DNA of 64,000 nt, taken from the NCBI GenBank assembly GCA_002104945.1, contig MCFH01000064.1, positions 124,001 through 188,000 on the forward strand. Direction: 5' to 3'. The notes under the pieces were generated by a model, which worked only from the letters and a program-made list of their open reading frames with translations, was not told the origin of the DNA and did not search any database. Shown piece after piece: positions 3,501-59,302 of this stretch. This DNA is from Piromyces finnis finn. Lineage: Eukaryota; Fungi; Neocallimastigomycota. Numbering within the stretch: position 1 is the stretch's first letter; every line of letters begins with the position of its first letter. A program made the translations under genes and the position numbers.

Positions 3501-4674
3501 TTTTTCTATTTAATAAAGTTTATATCAATTAAGCTTTAATAATAATATTATTATTATTAAACTTTTATATTACATAATAAATAATGTGTAATATAATGAA
3601 TTTAAGATGAATTAATTGAATTGGATTGTAATATATTAATTCTAATGGTTGTCTTTTTTTTTAAATATAAAAATTATTTAATTATGTAAATTAGTTTTAC
3701 TTATTAAAATAAATAATTAAACCTATGATATTCTATAAATTTTATTAATGTTATATAAAATATAAAATTTATCGTGACAAATATATTGAATAATGCTAAA
3801 ATAATCATTTTTAAATTGATTAAATTCTTTAATATATTTTCATTATTTAAAATTTTATATAATGTTATATCCAATAGTGTAAATAGAATATCAATTATTA
3901 TACTATATATAATTAATATAATTGTTATATGATCATCATTAAAATTATAATAATTGGAGTTTGGAATATTAAAACTTTAAACCTTTTTTATATTAATTTC
4001 ATTTATTTTTTTTTTAATTTTATTGTGTTATATTTTAATATTTGTTTAATTTTTTAATATTTATACTAATATTTAATCAGATAAACAAAAATTATATATA
4101 TAATTAAATTTCTTTCTTGGTTAAATACTTTAAATATTTTTTATTTTGTAGTTTTAGAAAGAATATATTTTATCTTTTATTCTAGTTTTGTTAAAACAAT
4201 TCAATATAAAAGAATAATAAAAATTAATTCGAATAAGTAAAAAATTATAAATAAAAAAGCTAAAATATAAAAATAATATAAAGTATATATAATTCAAAAT
4301 ATGAAATATCATTTTAATGATAGGTATTATTAAGAGAAATTAAAAAAAAGAGTCATTAAAAATTAACACTGGAAATATAACAAATATATTGTTATACATA
4401 AATAACAAATTTTAAAAAATATAACTCAAATATTCCATTTTATAAAATAGGCAATATTTGAATATATTTTAGTATCCCTTATAAAATTGTTAAAATAAAA
4501 AACAAATTCAATAAAAAAAAAAAAAAATAAAATACAACAACAAAAAAGAATACTGTTAATAATTTTAAATCAATTATTATAATGATGAAATTCTTCATAT
4601 TTATAGTAATTTTAATACTTTGTAAGAATAGAATAAATAATATATCAATAATAGTAGCATATAAATTGATATTA

Positions 4675-42624: not shown

Positions 42625-45009
42625 TTATTTTCTCTTTAACATTTCAAATCCTAATCAAATATCAAATATAATATAATAATATTATTAATATATTGATAAA
42701 TTACTTTTATAAATTATAATAAATTTTATAATTACTTTTTTCTAATTCTTCATAACTGACTGTATTTACTGTAGAATTATGTTCAATACTGTCATCAGTA
42801 TTGTCACCAATTCTATTGTTTGGAATATCCGGGAAATTTAATATTTGCTATTTAAAAGTATAAATAAATAAATAAATAATGTTATCAAAATAATTATATT
42901 AATTCTAAAATAAATTAAATTAAAAAAAAATTACATCGTCATTATTGTTATTATTATTATTATTCATATTTTCGTTAATATTTGGAAGTGAAGTATAAGA
43001 AGGTGGTGGTGAATCTAACTTTGAGAGTAGGTTAAAATTAGGATCTTGGTTTTGAGTTTGCTTTTGAGTTCTTCTTTGAAATTCTGCCATAGAACTTACT
43101 CCAAAATAACTTTCCTCTGAATTAAATGCCTTGTTGTTGTTGTTGTTGTTGTCATTGTTCATGATATTATTTTTATTGTAATTCATATTGTGATTGTTTA
43201 TATTGTTTTTGGTATTATTATTACCATCCAAATTATCGATTTGTTCATTCAGATATTGATCTGACATTAACTCCTGCTTATATTGCTCGATTTCATCAAG
43301 TAATGAATCCTTTCTTGATAACTTTTTAAATTCGCTTTTATTTATATTCATATTATTATTCATATTATTATAATTGCTATTATCATAATTTTGATTGTTT
43401 CCATTATTGTAATCATTATTACTGTTGTAATTGTTATTTCTCATATTATTATAATCATTATTATAATTATTATTCATATTGTTGTCGTTATAGTTATTAT
43501 TATAATTATTATTCATATTATTTTGGTTATAATTATTACCATTGTTATTGTAATCATTATTTCCATTTATATTATCATAATAGCTATTACCATTGTTATT
43601 ATAATTATTGTTTCCATTCATATTATCATTATAATTATTGTTGTTATTATAATTATTATTTCCATTCATATTACCATTATAATTATTGTTATTATAATTA
43701 TTATTTCCATTCATGTTATCATAATAACTATTGTTATTATTATTGTTATTATTATTGTTGTTATTGTTGTTGTTGTTATTATAATTATTCATATTATTCA
43801 TGTTAAAGTTTGTCATATTATTTATATTATCATATTCATTCATACTATTGTTATAATTATAGTTGGTATCATAATTATCAATGTAACGATTATTTCCATA
43901 AGCATTGTTATTATAATTGTTTCCATTATTACAATAATTATTATTGTTATTGTTATTATAATTATAATTATTATTCATATTTGGATCACTATAATTTGGT
44001 AAGCAATTAAAGTCGCTTTCCATTGTAGCCTCATCTGCATCTAATCCGTTAGTATTTTTCTTTGGATGGACAGCTACAAAACTATTAAGTTCACCATCAA
44101 GCTCACTACCACCAATAATCTTATTTTATTTAATTAAAATATATAATATATTAATATTAATAATTAGAGTCGAACATATGAAAATAAATTAAAATATATT
44201 TACTTCATCTCTATTTTTTTCTTCTTCCTCAGGAGGGCATTCCCATTTAACGTTATAAATATTAGCAATCTCTGTTAAATATTTATTAACCAAAGTTTTA
44301 CTTGGAGTTTCATTTTTAAAGAAATTGTAAATTTTTGGATGAATTTCATTTCCATAATTATCATACTGAACATTATTAATTTCAATTCCAAATTTGTACA
44401 CTAATGCTTTATGAATCTTTAAAAAAAAAAACAATAAATAAATAAATATTATTAATTTTTTATTTTTATATAATATAAATTTTTATATTTACATCAACAA
44501 GCTCTTTAATATCATATCTTGGAGCAGCATAAGCAATTGACTTGACAGCTTCAGAAATTGAATTATCTAAATCACTTTAGAATTAAAGTACATGGCAAAT
44601 AAATTAAAAAATATATAAAATAAAAATATAAATTATTAATTATAAATCTATACTTTGATTGTATTAAAAGCCCATATCTTGATATTAATAATTCGCAAAG
44701 TAATTCGAGAACCTCTAAAACTTCAATATTATAATCTTCCTTAATAATCTGCTCGACCTAATATTTCATTAAGAATTGAAAATATGATATTAATAAATTA
44801 TATATAAATCATAATTATTTATAGATAAATACTCTTATTCTTGCACTGGTTTCTTTTCCATTTTCTAAAAGAATTGAAATTTCCTTTTTTGCTGTGTTAT
44901 TAATTGAATTCTTTTTTGATTGTAAAAGTTTTAATCTTGCAATAGCTAATCTTAATGAGACTTTGGTTTTGTTAGGGTCAAATTTAGATTTTACTAACTT
45001 CTTCTTCAT
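42625..45009 (-). CDS. IST1: ESCRT-III-like factor IST1 with an Asn/Tyr-rich linker and C-terminal MIM
   Basis: Core 'KFDPNKTKVSLRLAIARLKLLQSKK..KKEISILLENGKETSARIR|VEQIIKED..ELLISR..SISEAVKSIAYAAPR..LVNKYLTEIANIYNVKW'. Terminal exons splice to 'FPDIP..SYEELEK|RFEMLKRK*', a MIM1-like motif. Confidence 0.9.
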
Positions 45010-47656: not shown

Positions 47657-50600
47657 ATGACTTTATTTAGAAAAATTAAGCTTTCACCAAAAAGTGGAAG
47701 AAGAAAGAGTCGTCATATTAGTAAAAGTAAAAGTAATGATCAGTCTTTTACAAGTTTAAACGAGTCTGTACCATCTGTTGTTGAGAGCATTGAAAATAAT
47801 TCATCTTCAAACTTTTCAGAGAAAGAAGGTAGTTCTCTCCATCAAAAAATAAATCAAAATTTATCTTTGAGTATTGCAATTAATGATATTGAAATTCCCA
47901 AAGATATAATTACATATAATTGCTTTGAAGATATTAATACAACTAATATTGATAATAATAAAAATACTAATACTGATAATAAAATTAATTTAATTTCAAA
48001 TCCAGAAACAACGACTGACATTTTATCTGAATCAAAAGTAATTGAAAAATCAGAATCAGAAGAATTAATTAAAAAATCAATTAAGAAAGAAACACCTATT
48101 AAAGAATCAATAAAAGAAGAGGCTGATAAAGTAATAACAGAAGAAATAGTGATAAAAAATCCAATACAAAAAAATACTGATAGTTCAGAATTAGAAGAAA
48201 AAAATAAGGAAAATTCAACTACAGAAAAAAACTTTATTAAAGATATAAAATCGAAAGAGGATAATATTGAAAATCAAATTAAAGAAAAATTAGTTGAAAA
48301 TTCTGAATTAAAAGAGGAAAATATTGAAACACAAAAAATAGAAAAAGTTACTAAAAATATAGAATTAAAAAAAGTTAACATTGAAACATCAATTTCAGAG
48401 AATATTTCTGAAGTTAAAAAATCAAAGGAAAATATTGTTAAAAACCTTGACACCATTGAAAATACAGAAAAACAAAATACAGATTCTTATTTAAAGATTA
48501 ATAATAGTTTAGTAGCTAAACAAAACGAGATAGAAGTAGAACGAAAAACTAGTAATATTGAAAAAGATAACTCATTTGAAATAAAAAGTAAATTAAGTTC
48601 AGAAAATTTAAATAAACTTATTAAGGAAAATAAATCAGAGTTACTTGATAATAATAGTAATATTGAAACTCTCGAAGAAAATATAATTCAATCTAAAAAT
48701 ATTTTAATTCCAAATACTGAAAAAGAAAAGGAAGATTATTTAAATAGTTCTATTGAAAATATTAAAATAAATATTGAAACAGAAACATCAGAAAAAACTA
48801 AGCAACAAAACAGTCTATCTAATAATAAAAATTCATTATTAAAGTCAAATATTAAAGAAGAAAATAACAATCCTATTAAATTAATAAATTCGACTGAAAA
48901 ATATTTATTAAAACCAAAAATGCAAAACTCAGAAGAAAAACCTGATAATTCTGATATTATTTCTTTAAAATCTTTAAAATCATTAGGTACAAGTTAAAAA
49001 TTATTATTAATAATAAAAATATTGTAATGATTTATTTATTAATACTTATTTTTTTTATATAACTTATTGTTATAAATTAAATAGATACAAAGGTTTGTTT
49101 AATTATATATAAAACATATAAATAAATCAATTAATGATGTAATGAAAATTTAATATAAAAAAATATAGGATATCCCAATAGTAAACAATAATATTGAAAA
49201 TGTCACTCATTATACATTGGTAACCAATAACAAACAATTATATAAATCAACAATTAAATTTTATATTACTTTAGGTTTTCATATTGACAATTTGAAAAGT
49301 AAGTACAATTTAAAACGTGAATTTGAAGCTACTACATGGGAAGATCAACATTATACTAAGACATTGGTTGAATATAATGAAGAAGAACATACATTATTTG
49401 ATGAAGAAACATGGCTTTTTTTAGCAAATGAAAACGGAAGAATAGCTTTACGTATTGTAGAAAATTTGCAAAAAGATTTTGCTGTTGCCGATTTTTCTCA
49501 AGCATCTGATGAAAAGCTACATCAACTTTTAGTAGAATGTGCTTCTGTAGAGAATGCATACATGACGTTTAACGCAGAATTAGATGTAAATTTAATATTA
49601 AGACTTTATGATATTAACAATATATATTAATCCATAATAATATATAAACTTTAGGAAATTGAGAAAAAATTTAAAGAAATGGAACGTCCATATAAGTTAA
49701 TTAAATCACCAATTTTAGGAACTGATGAAGTATATAAGCAAATTTATACTTATGATCCATTATTAAATTTATTAGAATTTCATGATAAGACTGCATATGA
49801 TAAATTAATGAATGTAACAGAATTTTCTGAACAATCAAAAAAGAAAAATTTGACAAATCAAAAACCAGAAAAAAAAATGGCTATTATGACTAGTGGAAAG
49901 GAAACATCTGGTATGAATGCAGCTATTCGTGCACTTGTTAGATGTGGTTTAACAGAAAGAATAACACCATACATTATTTTTAATGGTTTTAAAGGTAATA
50001 TATATATTTAATTATTAATTAAAAAAATAAATTTACGGAGTATATTAATATTATAATTAAAGGCCTTGTAAAGGGTGATAATTCTATTAAAAAAGCTGGA
50101 TGGGAAGACGTTCGTGGTCTTTTACCATTGGTAAGAATAGAAATTAATAAAACTAAAAAAAAAAAAAAAAAAAAAATAAATTATTTATAATTATTTAAAT
50201 AATACTTAGGGAGGTACTGTTTTGGATAGTTCTGATTGTAGTTATATTGCAACTCATGAAAGTAGATTAAAAGCAGCAAAAAATCTATATAAACTAGGAA
50301 TCAAATATTTAGTTATTATTGGTGATAATGAAAGTTTTTCATATGCTGAGATTCTTCAAAATGAATGGAATGATTTAATTAATGAATTAATTAACAGTAA
50401 TTCTATTGAAATCCCTGAAAACAATAGTAATAGTAAATACACATTATCTATACTTGCTTTACCTGCAACTATTGATAATGATATTGCCATGACAGGTATA
50501 TTTATTAATAGCTTTAAGAATATAAGTATATATATATTCAAAAATACTATTATTTAATATGAAAATTTAAATATTTTATTATAATTTAAATAGATCTAAC

Positions 50601-52979
50601 TCTTGGTACTTGTACTTCATTAGAAAGAATTTGTGAAGCTCTTGATTCTTTAGAATCAACAGCTCAATCACACCAAAGATGCTTTATTATTAAGGTTGTT
50701 GGTAAGCGTTGTGGTTGGCTTGCATTAATGGCGGCCATTGCTGTAGGTGCCGATTGCACATTTATTCCAGAACGTCCACCACCATTCCAACAAGATGTAA
50801 ATATCACTTGGGAAGAAGAAATGTGCAATATTATTAAAACTGTATGTATAGTTTATTAAATATATCTATTTTTTTTATGTATAATAAAATTCTCAATAAT
50901 TCACTAATTCATATATTATCATTAAAAGAAACGTGAAAAGGGTAATAGAAAAAGCATTATCGTTGTTAGTGAAGGTGCGACAGATAAAAACTTAAATCCA
51001 ATTACAGCAACTTACATTAAAGAAATCGTGGAAAAGAATTTAAATATTGATACAAGAATTACAACTTTGGGTCATATTCAAAGAGAAGGTATCCCATGTG
51101 CCTATGATAGATTCCTTGTAAGTAAAGACTTTACCAATGATATAAAAATATAATTTAAAGTTTATATATTTATTTTAATTCTTTTTTAAATACTAACAAA
51201 TATTTACATGAAGGCTACTGTTCAAGCTTCAGAAATTGTTACAGAAATATTAAATTCAAAAGAAGATGAACAATTATCAACTTTAATTGGTGTTTGTAAT
51301 AATACTATCACTAAAACCCCATTAAAACAATCTGTTCAATTGGTAATTTTACAACGATAATTATTATATTTTAAATGAAATGTGTAAAATTTTCAGTTTT
51401 TAAATAAATTAATAAATATTTTTAAAAATTAGACAACTTCTATTAGTGAAGCTCTTTCAAACAAAATGTTTGACACAGTTATGAACCTTAGAGATCCTGA
51501 TTTTAAAGCTTCATATAATGCTTATATTGAAAGTACTTTATTCTCAAGCAATTCAAAGAAATTGGAAGAAGAAAATGTAAGTAATTATAAAATTTGATGA
51601 AATGCTTAAATATATTCATATTTAAAATATTAATTTTATTATTATTAATTAAAAAAGTGTTTAAGAATTGGTATTATTCATGTTGGTTCACCTGCAGGAG
51701 GTATGAATGCTGCTACGAGAGCTGCTGTTCGTCTTTGTCTTAATAGAGGTCATACTCCAGTTGGTATATTTAATAGTTTTTCAGGTTTAGTTAATGGAGA
51801 AGTTAGACCATTAACTTGGCAAGAAGTTGGTGGATGGACTACTATTGGTGGCTCAAAGTTAGGTATTAATCGTAGTCAACCAACACCAGTTCTTAAATCT
51901 AAAAAGTTATACAAAAAGTATAACGTCGATCCAAACGAGTTAATTGATATTGGTTTAATTGCATATCATTTACAAGAACAAAACATTCAAGGTTTGTTAA
52001 TCATTGGTGGTTATGAAGCTTATTGTAGTTTATATACTTTATATGAAGCAAAGTCAATTTATCCATCTTTGTGTATTCCAATGGTTCAAATTGCAGCTAC
52101 TGTATCAAATAATATTCCTGGTACTGATCATTCTATTGGATCTGATACAGCATTAAATACAATTGTTCAAGCTTGTGATCATATTAAGCTTTCTGCTAGT
52201 GCATCTCAAAGACGTGTATTTATTGTTGAAGTTCAAGGTGGTAATTGTGGGTACGTATCCTCAATAACATTAATAATAGTTGATATAATTGATATAAAAA
52301 TAATAAAATATTCTAATATATTTATAGTTATCTTTCAACTATGGGTGGTCTTGCTTGTGGTGTAACATGTACTTATGGACCTGAAAATGGTATTTCATTA
52401 AATAAATTAAAGAATGATAAAAGACATTTAACAAGAAGATATAAAGAAGCCGAATTAAAGGGTATTAAGAATGAAGGAAGAATTATCATTAGAAATGAAT
52501 TTACTAATTCTAGTACTTATTCTACTAAGGTTATTGCTTCTATCTTAAATGAAGAAGGTCATGGTTTATTTGATTGTAGAACTGCTGTTTTAGGACATCT
52601 TCAACAAGGGGGTTTGCCATCACCATTAGATAGAATTAGAGCAGTAAGACAAGCTGTAGAATGTATTAATTGGCTTGAAATGAAAACAAAAGAAAATAAA
52701 AAGATATCTACTTATAAAAAATACCATAAAGTTAATGCTAAAAAGGATGAATTTAGAAATGTTGATAAAGAAGCTTATGTTATTGGTATTCGTGGTGACA
52801 AATTAGTATTTACACCAGTTAATGAATTAATTAAGGAAACTGACATAGATTTAAGAAAGGGTAGTCGTAATTGGTGGATGAAATATTATCCATTAATAAA
52901 AATTTTATCAAAATATTATTACTTTGACGTAAATGATGAAACCGACATAGATTATTTGACGAATGAAAAGAATATATAA
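47657..52979 (+). CDS. PFK: Fungal-type ATP-dependent 6-phosphofructokinase homolog: long N-terminal extension, Pfk_N glyoxalase-like domain, degenerate catalytic half and intact regulatory half
   Basis: Exon 47657-48986 joins an 8-nt exon (49085-49092) and then 49169 onward. Pfk_N-like 'VTHYTLVTNNKQLYKSTIKFYITLGF'; N-half 'GMNAAIRALVR..TIDNDIAMT|DLTLG..LGHIQREG'; C-half 'GSPAGGMNAATRA..ATVSNNIPGT..RRVFIVEVQGGNCG..LGHLQQGG'. Confidence 0.9.
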
Positions 52980-56617: not shown

Positions 56618-59302
56618 TTATTTCTCCTTTTCATCTTCTTGTTTATTAATTAAAGTAGTTTCAGTAGAGGCTTCAGAAATTTCTGATTGTATTTCTGATT
56701 TATCAGTAACTGGATCAATATCGATATTTGTAGAAGTGGCATCAGTAGCAACTTCATTAATATCAATGACTTTTTCATCTTCTTTATTTTTTTTAACCTG
56801 TAATGGATCACCATCGGCTTGTTGCTGAGCCTTCCACATTTTTGCATATTTTCCATTTTTATATAAAAGATCCCAATGATTACCTCTTTCAACAATTGTA
56901 CCATTTTCAAGAACAAAAATCTCATCACAATTAACAACAGTACTTAAACGATGAACAACAAATATAGTGGTATGATGATGCAAACTAACTTTTTGATCTT
57001 TTTTATTTTCTTTTAATAATTCATCAATATTATTCATAATAGCTCTTTCAGTTGTGGTGTCTAACGCACTTGTAGCTTCGTCGAAAAGTAAAATTCTTGG
57101 ATTTTTTAAGATAGCTCTGGCAAGAGCAACTCTTTGTTTTTCACCACCACTAATCATAGTACCTCTTTGACCAACCTTGGTTTCATATCCTTCTGGGAAT
57201 TGATTAACAATAACATCATGAATGTTAGCTTTTTTAGCAGCTTCATAAATTTCTTCCGGTTTTGCATCTGGTTTAGCATATGCAATATTATAATAAATAG
57301 ATTGATTAAAAAGTGGTGTATCCTGTGGAACAATACCAAAAGAATTTCTTAAACTTCTAATCTTAACTTTAGAAATATCTTGATCATCGATATAAATATG
57401 ACCTTCCTGAGGGTCATAAAAACGTTGCAATAATCTTAAAATAGTAGATTTACCACTTCCGCTTGATCCTACAAAAGCAACTCTAGAGCCTGCTGGGATT
57501 GTAAAAGAAATATTGTTTAAAATTGGTTGTCGTTCCTTATTATAACCAAATGTAATGTTTTCAAATTTAATTTCACCACCTTTACGATCTAAATCAATTG
57601 GTTGGGCATCTTCAATTTCAGGAACAGAAGTACTAATTTGTTTTAAACGAAACATTAAGTCCATATCCAATAAACTTTGAGTTGTTTCACGGTAGACAGA
57701 ACCAAGGAAATGAAGTGGAACAGATAATTGGAATATTAAACTGTTGATCATAACAATATCACCAACAGAAAAAACGCCTCCAAGAACACCATTAGCAGCC
57801 ATAAGCATCATAGTTGATAAAGCTATACTGAAAATGGCATTTTGACCAGAATTTAAAAAGGCTAAACTAGCCATAGATTGTGTAGCAGCTTTTTCGTATT
57901 TAGCTAAAGATTTATCATAAATTTTAGTTTCAAAACCTTCATTACAGAAAGATTTTACTACTTCAAAATTAATTAGTGAATCTGTAGCATGAGCTGAAGC
58001 TTGATTATCAGCCATATTCATACGTCTTCTAATTTTAGTTCTCCAAGTAGTAGTAGTTAAAGTAAAAGCAGTATAAGTAGCAATTGTTGCTAATGCAACT
58101 AACGCATAAGCAACACCAAATCTTTTTATTAAAATACAACAAACCATACCAATTTCAAGAAGAGTTGGACCAATGTGGAAAAGAAGAGCATGTAAAACTT
58201 GATTAATACCCTTTGTACCTCTGTCAATTGCACGAGTTAATGCACCAGTTTGACGTGTCAAATGGAAATTACAATCTAAACTATGAAGATGATAGAAAAT
58301 AGATTTTGAGGCTTTACGAATTGCTTTTTGAGCAACTGAAGAAAAAACAGCATTTCTACTTTCTTGGGTAACATTTGCACCTAATCTTGAAACACCATAA
58401 CCAATTAAAGATGCATAAATATAGGTTAATAGTTTACTACCAGGTATAGGTTTAGCATTTAATTGATCAATAGCATATTTAAAGAAGTATGGAACTGTAA
58501 CATTTAAGATTTTTGATAAAACCAAAAGGAAAAGAGCAAAAACAACTCTAATTTTTATAGCTTTTTCATTTTTTGGCCAAATATATTCGAAAAAAATCTT
58601 TAAAACTTCTTTTCTTGTTTTCCAAGTCATTTTTTTTTCTGGAAGACCCAGTGCTTTTGGTGAAAGAATTACTTTTGAAGCCGATTTTTTATCTAAAGTT
58701 ACAATAGCACTAGTTTTATTTAAATCATTGGATAACTTTGTTATATTACCTTTAAGTAAAGGTGTAATAGTCTTTGCTTTTGGTATGCTTTTATTTATTT
58801 CATGAATGGAAGCTTTTTGGGTTATATTTTTTGAATTTTTGGTTACTGACATAAATCTATGGGTATACCATTGAAATTTTAATTTATCAAATACTTCATT
58901 GGTATTGGTATTTGTTAATGATTTCTTTGAAATAAATATATATAATAGATAATTTTATATTAAATACATATGCATTTAATATTTATAAAAAATATTAACA
59001 TTTAATTATTATTATTATTATTATTATATTGTTAATTAAATAAAAAGGTTATTTTAATAATTAAGAAATAATATAATTTAAGAAAAAAATCTTACATTAA
59101 TATTTTGAGGATTTTGGAGGTTACAACGGTTGGAAGTTTGAATTTTAATTATGGAATATAATGATAAATTACAAAAGGCAGTTTTATTTATTTTATTTTT
59201 ACTTATTAATACATTGGATAATTTTTGTTGTGAAAGATTAAATAATAAATCAGTATGAACTGATAAATTATGAATAGTATATTTAAGACATGAACTATTC
59301 AT
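56618..59302 (-). CDS. ATM1: Mitochondrial-type Fe-S export half-ABC transporter (ABCB7/Atm1); 2 exons
   Basis: Exon 1 (59302-59096, GTAAGA donor) splices in phase 0 to exon 2 (58924-56618). TMD 'KILNVTVPYFFKYAID..RQTGALTRAIDRGTKGI..DSLINFEVVKSF'; Walker A GSSGSGKST, signature ISGGEKQR, Walker B LLFDEATSALD, H-loop VVHRLST. Confidence 0.95.

Follow-up and report, generated by a model that had tools for sequence, protein, structure and literature searches.

A tandem phosphofructokinase (PFK) gene of the anaerobic gut fungus Piromyces finnis (Neocallimastigomycota) probably encodes a conserved third PFK paralogue in which the ATP site has been dismantled and the sugar-phosphate site kept, and which would serve as a non-catalytic regulatory or sensing subunit. 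The gene, here termed type C to distinguish it from two canonical paralogues, types A and B, lies in a 64,000-nucleotide stretch of contig MCFH01000064.1 (positions 124,001 to 188,000 of the forward strand; hereafter the window, whose own coordinates are used throughout). An initial annotation of the window had singled out the region 49880-51130 as coding for a PFK paralogue whose ATP site is dismantled but whose fructose 6-phosphate (F6P) site and regulatory C-half are preserved, and had placed it in a fermentative fungus. The host agrees with this, and alignment to solved PFKs finds the residues canonical or changed just as claimed, with every listed motif change lying where that annotation had put it and every retained motif present.

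The type C gene occupies 47657-52979 on the + strand, consists of 12 exons and encodes a fungal tandem PFK paralogue of 1,467 amino acids (aa), with its start ~2.2 kb upstream of the region originally flagged. The window is very AT-rich (GC 13-26% per 2 kb), and the flagged region comprises parts of five exons together with four short introns that contain stops; the claim that it forms an intact open reading frame (ORF) thus fails for the unspliced DNA, but holds for the frame that is opened by splicing. All introns in the model are of the GT-AG type, and the spliced translation aligns end to end with fungal tandem phosphofructokinases. The product is composed of an arm of ~446 aa rich in K, E, N, S and I, a probable glyoxalase-like N domain, a degenerate N-half and a canonical C-half. 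Two intron-less transcripts, L009 and L010, are colinear with the spliced window model in a single frame at 84-85% identity, a match that confirms the splice junctions and demonstrates transcription of the orthologues. These transcripts begin ~1.2 kb beyond the initial gene model, with MTLFRK..., in what had appeared as a "separate" 446-aa ORF at 47657-48997. The exon-intron structure, the true 5' end and the ~446-aa paralogue-specific extension had all been missed in the initial annotation. The sequencing runs X1-X4 contain 0.70-0.73 of the 31-mers of the stretch, about the exonic share, suggesting that they look like spliced transcripts. The spliced window model was used for translation, alignment, trees and the ratio of nonsynonymous to synonymous substitution rates (dN/dS), and database searches were run with single exons or with full-length L009.

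Residue correspondences were established by exon-by-exon alignment to solved yeast, Pichia, mammalian and bacterial PFKs and are given in bacterial numbering. In bacterial PFK, Mg is bound by D103, the phosphate in transfer is stabilised by R72 and R171, and ATP is contacted by the backbone of G11 and G104; R162 and R243 bind the 6-phosphate of F6P across the subunit interface. In the N-half of type C the motif TSGGD is replaced by TSGKE (G11K, D12E), GSARCxxFR by DSSDCSYIA (R72D, R77A), GGDGS by GDNES (G102D, D103N, G104E; extended as GDNESFSY at 50321-50344), EVMGR by KVVGK (E to K, M169V, R171K) and QRGG by QREG (G253E), and position 124 is Ala (G124A). The motifs TIDND (T125, D127, D129), SHQR (R162), SEG (E222), DTR (R243) and LGH.QR (H249, R252) are kept in the same half, as are all four contacts to the 6-phosphate of F6P. 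Given the established roles of these residues in PFKs, type C is predicted to be unable to phosphorylate F6P with ATP and yet to bind F6P or a related sugar phosphate.

These replacements are shared across the type C family. G11, R72, D103, G104 and R171 have become K, D/E, N, E and K, respectively, in 5/5 type C sequences (the window, L001, L009, L010 and P0373), and TSGKE, D(S/T)S(D/E)C, GDNES, KVVGK and QREG are common to all C orthologues. T125, D127, D129, R162, E222, R243, H249 and R252 are kept in all of them, with Val in place of M169. The same ATP/Mg positions are canonical in types A and B, in chytrids and in representatives of the Glomeromycota and Mucoromycota. Of the alignment columns conserved in at least 26/27 of A, B and other fungal PFKs, 31/133 in the N-half are changed in all C orthologues, against 5/87 in the C-half (Fisher p = 6e-4). 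The N-half changes are nearly always to one fixed residue and cluster in the ATP-site motifs (model residues 667-668, 726-739, 760-771, 804-808, 850-854 and 952), and the five C-half changes are all conservative. The effector motifs of the type C C-half are canonical. In the Neocallimastix type C (P0373/L010) a C-half effector motif reads DSKTAILGPLQQGG, with R replaced by K and H by P, and the window, L001 and L009 retain the R and the H; the effector site may be drifting in this genus.

Word searches performed exon by exon recovered one orthologous exon, P0001 (with exon 4, which carries DSSDCSYIA), and chytrid fragments, and an exhaustive search of representative sequences with exon 9 (51658..52250) yielded no close relative, its best match being a Chytriomyces PFK. 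P0001 lies on ENA metagenome contigs, of which L001 contains the whole core gene with intron positions identical to those of the window. L009 and L010 were recovered from JGI metagenome contigs by means of the type-specific peptides EWNDLIN and IDNDIAM. The L010 protein clusters at 90% identity or above with ORY59356.1 (Neocallimastix californiae), KAG4091140.1 (N. lanati) and KAL6598898.1, all of which carry the same N-terminal arm and degenerate motifs. In public databases ORY59356.1 is named "PFK-domain-containing protein", with the UniRef name "6-phosphofructokinase" (A0A1Y2DJM5). Around residues 880-905 this protein (P0372) reads PECPLHSKKILILLGKKKCKREKG, and N. lanati and the transcript read PECPPPFQKDINITWEKEMCEIIKTKREKG; a splice site has probably been called wrongly in the public N. 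californiae gene model.

A profile search listed canonical fungal PFKs only, among them transcript-sized AT-rich contig sets that represent types A and B (G+C content at third codon positions, GC3, 0.16-0.21; untranslated regions 3-12% GC). Every canonical motif is present in both types. Their 90%-identity clusters hold NCBI proteins of N. californiae, N. lanati, N. sp. 'constans', Piromyces sp. E2, P. finnis and Anaeromyces robustus, and the type B cluster additionally contains Pecoramyces ruminantium. The initial annotation had anticipated that an intact PFK paralogue would exist, and A and B are indeed found in four genera. N. californiae encodes all three types (A, B and C: ORY17194.1, ORY32357.1 and ORY59356.1), as does N. 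lanati, so that an intact paralogue exists beside the degenerate one in single genomes; genomic contigs of A and C are also found together in the ENA assemblies ERZ27248326 and ERZ27248377. Six JGI metatranscriptome proteins labelled 'PFK' (P0241, P0246, P0247, P0251, P0254 and P0283) are A/B chimeras that switch at conserved stretches; as assembly artefacts they were left out of the trees.

In a maximum-likelihood tree of 31 sequences and 934 columns (support given as ultrafast bootstrap and SH-aLRT), A, B and C are each monophyletic at 100/100, A and C are sisters at 100/100, and the whole group is nested among chytrid PFKs. The duplication is older than the divergence among the sampled genera and was followed by rapid evolution of C, whose stem measures 0.82 substitutions per site against 0.21 for A, about four times the length. 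The type A gene is interrupted by introns only after residues 139 and 285, both at positions common to C (L054 2441-5827; L055 2423-5812), and its last exon runs uninterrupted for ~747 codons; at least seven further introns are present in C. One of the C introns, after EVQGGNCG, coincides with the end of an exon in chytrid homologues. An origin of C as a retrocopy can be ruled out, since C shares the introns of A, possesses more of them, and has one exon end in common with chytrids; instead, the pattern suggests that 3' introns were lost in the highly expressed A gene. The sister relationship of A and C would also be expected if C were merely the type A orthologue of a divergent fungal lineage, in which case no intact partner would be required. 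The presence of A, B and C together in both N. californiae and N. lanati rules this out, and with A and C contigs co-occurring in two metagenome assemblies we give this alternative practically no weight.

The dN/dS ratios were calculated by the Nei-Gojobori method for the six pairs formed by four type C coding sequences (dS 0.45-0.88). The degenerate N-half of C gives 0.09-0.16, its C-half 0.05-0.11 and its N domain 0.09-0.24, and between genera the catalytic N-half of A gives 0.08-0.09 and its C-half 0.09-0.16. The dismantled N-half is hence constrained about as tightly as a working catalytic half, and the expectation voiced in the initial annotation, that orthologues share the substitutions under purifying selection, is borne out by all of them. 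The head of the arm (residues 1-100) is less constrained at 0.24-0.38, and the rest of the arm falls at 0.5-1.2, where the alignment is uncertain. The long stem branch, a frame break in L001 and a 3' frameshift in L010 are features that might be expected of a decaying duplicate, a pseudogene or an assembly artefact with neutral or private substitutions. However, the core reads intact in the window and in L001 and L009, as do the proteins P0372 and P0373 over their full length. Transcripts are known, the two PFK halves have dN/dS values of 0.05-0.16, and the NCBI proteins in the 90% cluster of L010 do not share its frameshift. Pseudogene formation or neutral decay is accordingly ruled out by the dN/dS values, and we consider decay or artefact in any form extremely improbable. 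As to the two lesions, the L001 break lies at ~1273 in the low-complexity first exon and the L010 frameshift at 4054-4097 near the 3' end, and both are probably assembly errors in A-rich runs. With the loss of essential catalytic residues, purifying selection and orthologue transcripts (L009, L010), type C is best classed as a predicted pseudoenzyme.

In family and fold, type C belongs with the eukaryotic tandem PFKs. L009 matches PF00365 in two stretches (552.5 bits) and passes the NCBIfam model TIGR02478 (6PF1K_euk) with 873.6 bits against a cut-off of 708.4, type A scoring 1071.7. The window exon that aligns with the N domains of A and B is a weak match to Pfk_N (PF18468; 22.2 bits, below the cut-off of 26.8). 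An AlphaFold2 model of the L009 core (pLDDT 78.5, pTM 0.72) has as its top Foldseek matches the yeast PFK alpha subunit (3o8o_A, TMt 0.93) and human PFKL (8w2g_A, TMt 0.94). The former GSAR loop (DSSDCSY, residues 272-282) is among the few low-confidence segments of the otherwise confidently modelled N-half.

It might be argued that type C is still an enzyme, either a weak ATP-PFK or one that has turned to another donor such as pyrophosphate (PPi), or to another sugar phosphate, by way of the remodelled residues K11, D102, E104 and K171. The invariance of T125, D127, D129, E222, H249, R252, R162 and R243 in C would fit this, as would the purifying selection that acts on the N-half with the same strength as on the catalytic paralogue, and the acidic residue at 104 resembles the Gly-to-Asp switch of PPi-PFKs at this position that was reportedly described by Chi and Kemp. 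Against this, the Mg ligand D103, conserved in ATP- and PPi-dependent PFKs alike, is Asn, R72 is Asp or Glu, the GSAR loop is of low confidence in the model, and position 124 is Ala rather than the Lys of PPi-PFKs. Moreover, wherever a PPi-PFK model of NCBIfam is listed for both proteins, C scores below A (NF041103: 112.9 versus 143.4 bits) and the scores fall far short of the cut-off; two further PPi models are listed for A alone. A change of donor to PPi is therefore unsupported, being contradicted by N103, E104 and A124 and by the lower PPi-model scores, and continued catalysis of any kind appears unlikely to us.

The arm is found in type C alone, where it spans 370-446 aa; types A and B are without it, and it has no match in Pfam. 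Its conserved head begins MTLFRKI..KLSPK.GRRKS ... KINQNLSLSIAINDIEIPKDIITYNCFEDI in exon 0, and follows the consensus MTLFRKI..KLSPK(S/T)GR(R/K)KS ... EKEG..KINQNLSLS(I/L)AIND.E..KDI(I/V)TYNCFEDI (window 47657-47950; L009 192-480; P0373 1-100). The head has a basic, Ser-rich composition, lacks acidic residues over its first ~27 aa and contains RRKS and SP motifs; it could be a phosphorylation or targeting signal. L009, L010, ORY59356.1 and KAG4091140.1 share this head and run from it in-frame into the PFK part. In the window the connection depends on an 8-nucleotide microexon that restores the frame (...SLKSL-DTK-DIPIV); the L009 mRNA reads GATCCAGAG at this junction, and in the genomic orthologue L001 the microexon is ATCCAAAG, with the flanks cag|..|gttcgt. 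An exon as short as 8 nucleotides may be overlooked by automated gene callers.

The restriction of the arm to C suggests, as a working hypothesis, that it provides added regulation or targeting. Taken further, type C might have left PFK biology altogether and now moonlight in scaffolding or targeting, with an organelle, the cytoskeleton or RNA as examples of what it tethers to; its function would then reside mainly in the arm, and its PFK body would be an oligomerisation platform. The C-specific extension of 370-446 aa with its conserved ~95-aa head of basic and Ser motifs speaks for this, as does the GC3 of C (0.137), which is below that of A (0.164) and B (0.208) and suggests expression below that of the glycolytic subunits. 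On the other hand, a pure scaffold would need neither the contacts to the sugar phosphate nor the effector motifs of the C-half, yet both are conserved at every residue, and most of the arm is near-neutral (dN/dS 0.5-1.2), so that this too seems a rather improbable account.

We favour instead a non-catalytic PFK subunit with the following history. Type C would have arisen when the gene of canonical subunit A was duplicated at the DNA level, ahead of the divergence of the sampled genera, and during fast evolution along the C stem its N-half would have been stripped of the residues for MgATP binding and for stabilising phosphoryl transfer, while keeping the sugar-phosphate pocket (T125, D127, D129, E222, H249 and R252) together with R162 and R243. 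The effector C-half would have stayed canonical, and a long, probably disordered N-terminal arm with a conserved head would have been added. Two modes of action come into question for such a protein. By co-assembling with A/B it may change how many active sites there are and how they are regulated; alternatively, its N-terminal arm may let it act as a sensor of sugar phosphates or as a scaffold. That R162 and R243 are strictly retained fits the first option, under the hypothesis that C completes the F6P site of a neighbouring subunit in an A/B hetero-oligomer. A more specific version of the second, about which we are doubtful, is that C, derived from PFK, senses sugar phosphates with two effector-type pockets in each chain, the degenerate site of the N-half and the canonical one of the C-half, and uses its conserved head to recruit or regulate A/B or some other target; this would at the same time be a second, independent conversion from catalysis to regulation in the PFK fold.

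Several points weigh against a non-catalytic subunit. Inactivity, ligand binding and partnership with A/B are all deduced from sequence comparison, and the AlphaFold fold model carries no ligand information. C strictly retains T125, D127 and D129, the catalytic base among them, although mere binding would not obviously call for these residues; as the strict retention of D127 goes unexplained if C is purely a binder, residual or altered activity stays in contention. In principle, a different phosphoryl donor might be accommodated by K11, K171 and the acidic residue at 104. In addition, the coexistence of A, B and C rests on Neocallimastix genomes, in which C is ~83% identical to the core protein of the window.

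Comparison with known systems helps to place type C. It has the same fold and, with a probable glyoxalase-like N domain followed by an N-half and an effector C-half, the same architecture as the canonical fungal tandem ATP-PFKs (S. cerevisiae Pfk1/Pfk2, 3o8o; K. pastoris alpha/beta, 3opy; types A and B), from which it differs by the replaced ATP/Mg and transition-state residues of its N-half, the extra ~446-aa arm and the ~4x longer stem. Both subunits of yeast PFK (Pfk1/Pfk2) are catalytic, and the analogy of C to the yeast alpha and beta subunits is therefore a loose one. The C-half of every eukaryotic tandem PFK is a former active site that was turned into a fructose-2,6-bisphosphate effector site (PMC12203962). 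Type C appears to repeat this in its N-half, having an active site without ATP binding in which the sugar-phosphate pocket is kept; nevertheless, it has GDNES where the C-half has GGFEA, keeps TIDND where the C-half has TVSNN, and has lost R72, which the C-half keeps. As the substitutions differ, the route taken by type C would be independent of that of the C-half.

In the PPi-PFK of plants (PFP), the alpha subunit is a regulatory, non-catalytic homologue of the catalytic beta subunit and modulates activation by fructose 2,6-bisphosphate. Like type C, it is a paralogue of the PFK family with a degenerate active site that occurs beside a catalytic paralogue. It belongs, however, to another PFK clade (PPi-dependent and single-domain) and is devoid of an N-terminal arm, and the hetero-oligomer is established for PFP and is a prediction for type C. 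A third, non-catalytic component that tunes the regulation of a fungal PFK is seen in the gamma subunit of K. pastoris (PDB 3opy; PMC12203962), but gamma is not a PFK homologue and type C is PFK-derived. The AdoMetDC prozyme of T. brucei is a dead-paralogue activator for which structures have shown the regulatory mechanism (PMC5201418). It resembles type C in being a catalytically dead paralogue maintained under selection beside an active enzyme, with the differences that the family is another one and that the mechanism of C is inferred.

A literature search found no paper on the PFK of anaerobic fungi or on a dead fungal PFK, and the words inactive, pseudo, non-catalytic and fungi are absent from a 2025 review of the PFK superfamily. 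As the gene is already public under a generic name, what is new here is the recognition of a conserved pseudo-PFK with an added arm and not the gene itself. PFK is the textbook control point of glycolysis, and anaerobic gut fungi depend on substrate-level phosphorylation for their ATP, with glycolysis at its core. If our interpretation is true, a conserved dead PFK subunit would represent a new layer of flux control in these biotechnologically important degraders of lignocellulose, and a natural replay of the step in eukaryotic PFK evolution by which a duplicated active site became an allosteric site. Because C passes the 'equivalog' model TIGR02478 and bears the name 6-phosphofructokinase in UniRef, it may end up among the active isozymes in genome-scale metabolic models.

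Exons of the type C PFK gene and the motifs that they carry (window coordinates)
Feature	Coordinates	Strand	Remarks
Exon 0	47657..48986	+	start codon and low-complexity K/E/N/S/I-rich extension of ~443 aa; first ~95 aa conserved
Microexon, 8 nt (ATACAAAG)	49085..49092	+	joins exon 0 (phase 1) to the next exon; ag/gt flanks
Probable N-terminal glyoxalase-I-like PFK domain exon	49169..49585	+	weak Pfk_N match; aligns with A/B N domains
End of N domain and start of N-half	49655..49994	+	TSGKE 49889-49903 (G11K, D12E)
Short exon (LVKGDNSIKKAGWEDVRGLLPL)	50063..50130	+	following intron common to the type A gene
Degenerate ATP/Mg exon	50210..50495	+	DSSDCSYIA 50225-50251; GDNES 50321-50335; ATIDND 50465-50482
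SHQR/KVVGK exon	50594..50841	+	SHQR (R162) 50668-50679; KVVGK 50692-50706
SEG/DTR exon	50929..51117	+	SEG (E222) 50968-50976; DTR (R243) 51049-51057; GHIQREG 51070-51090
End of N-half and linker exon	51214..51342	+	from spliced model
Inter-half linker exon	51433..51576	+	from spliced model
First part of C-half (effector half)	51658..52250	+	canonical GSPAGGMNAA, GGSKLGINR, GGYEA, ATVSNN, EVQGG
Last exon: rest of C-half and C-terminal tail	52328..52979	+	RNE, LGHLQQGG; stop TAA 52977-52979

Two neighbouring genes, both on the - strand and neither with any link to the PFK gene that we could see, flank type C in the window. The gene at 42920-44023 encodes an extremely Asn-rich protein of 367 aa, and that at 56618-58852 is intron-less and encodes a 744-aa ABC half-transporter resembling mitochondrial ATM1/ABCB7.

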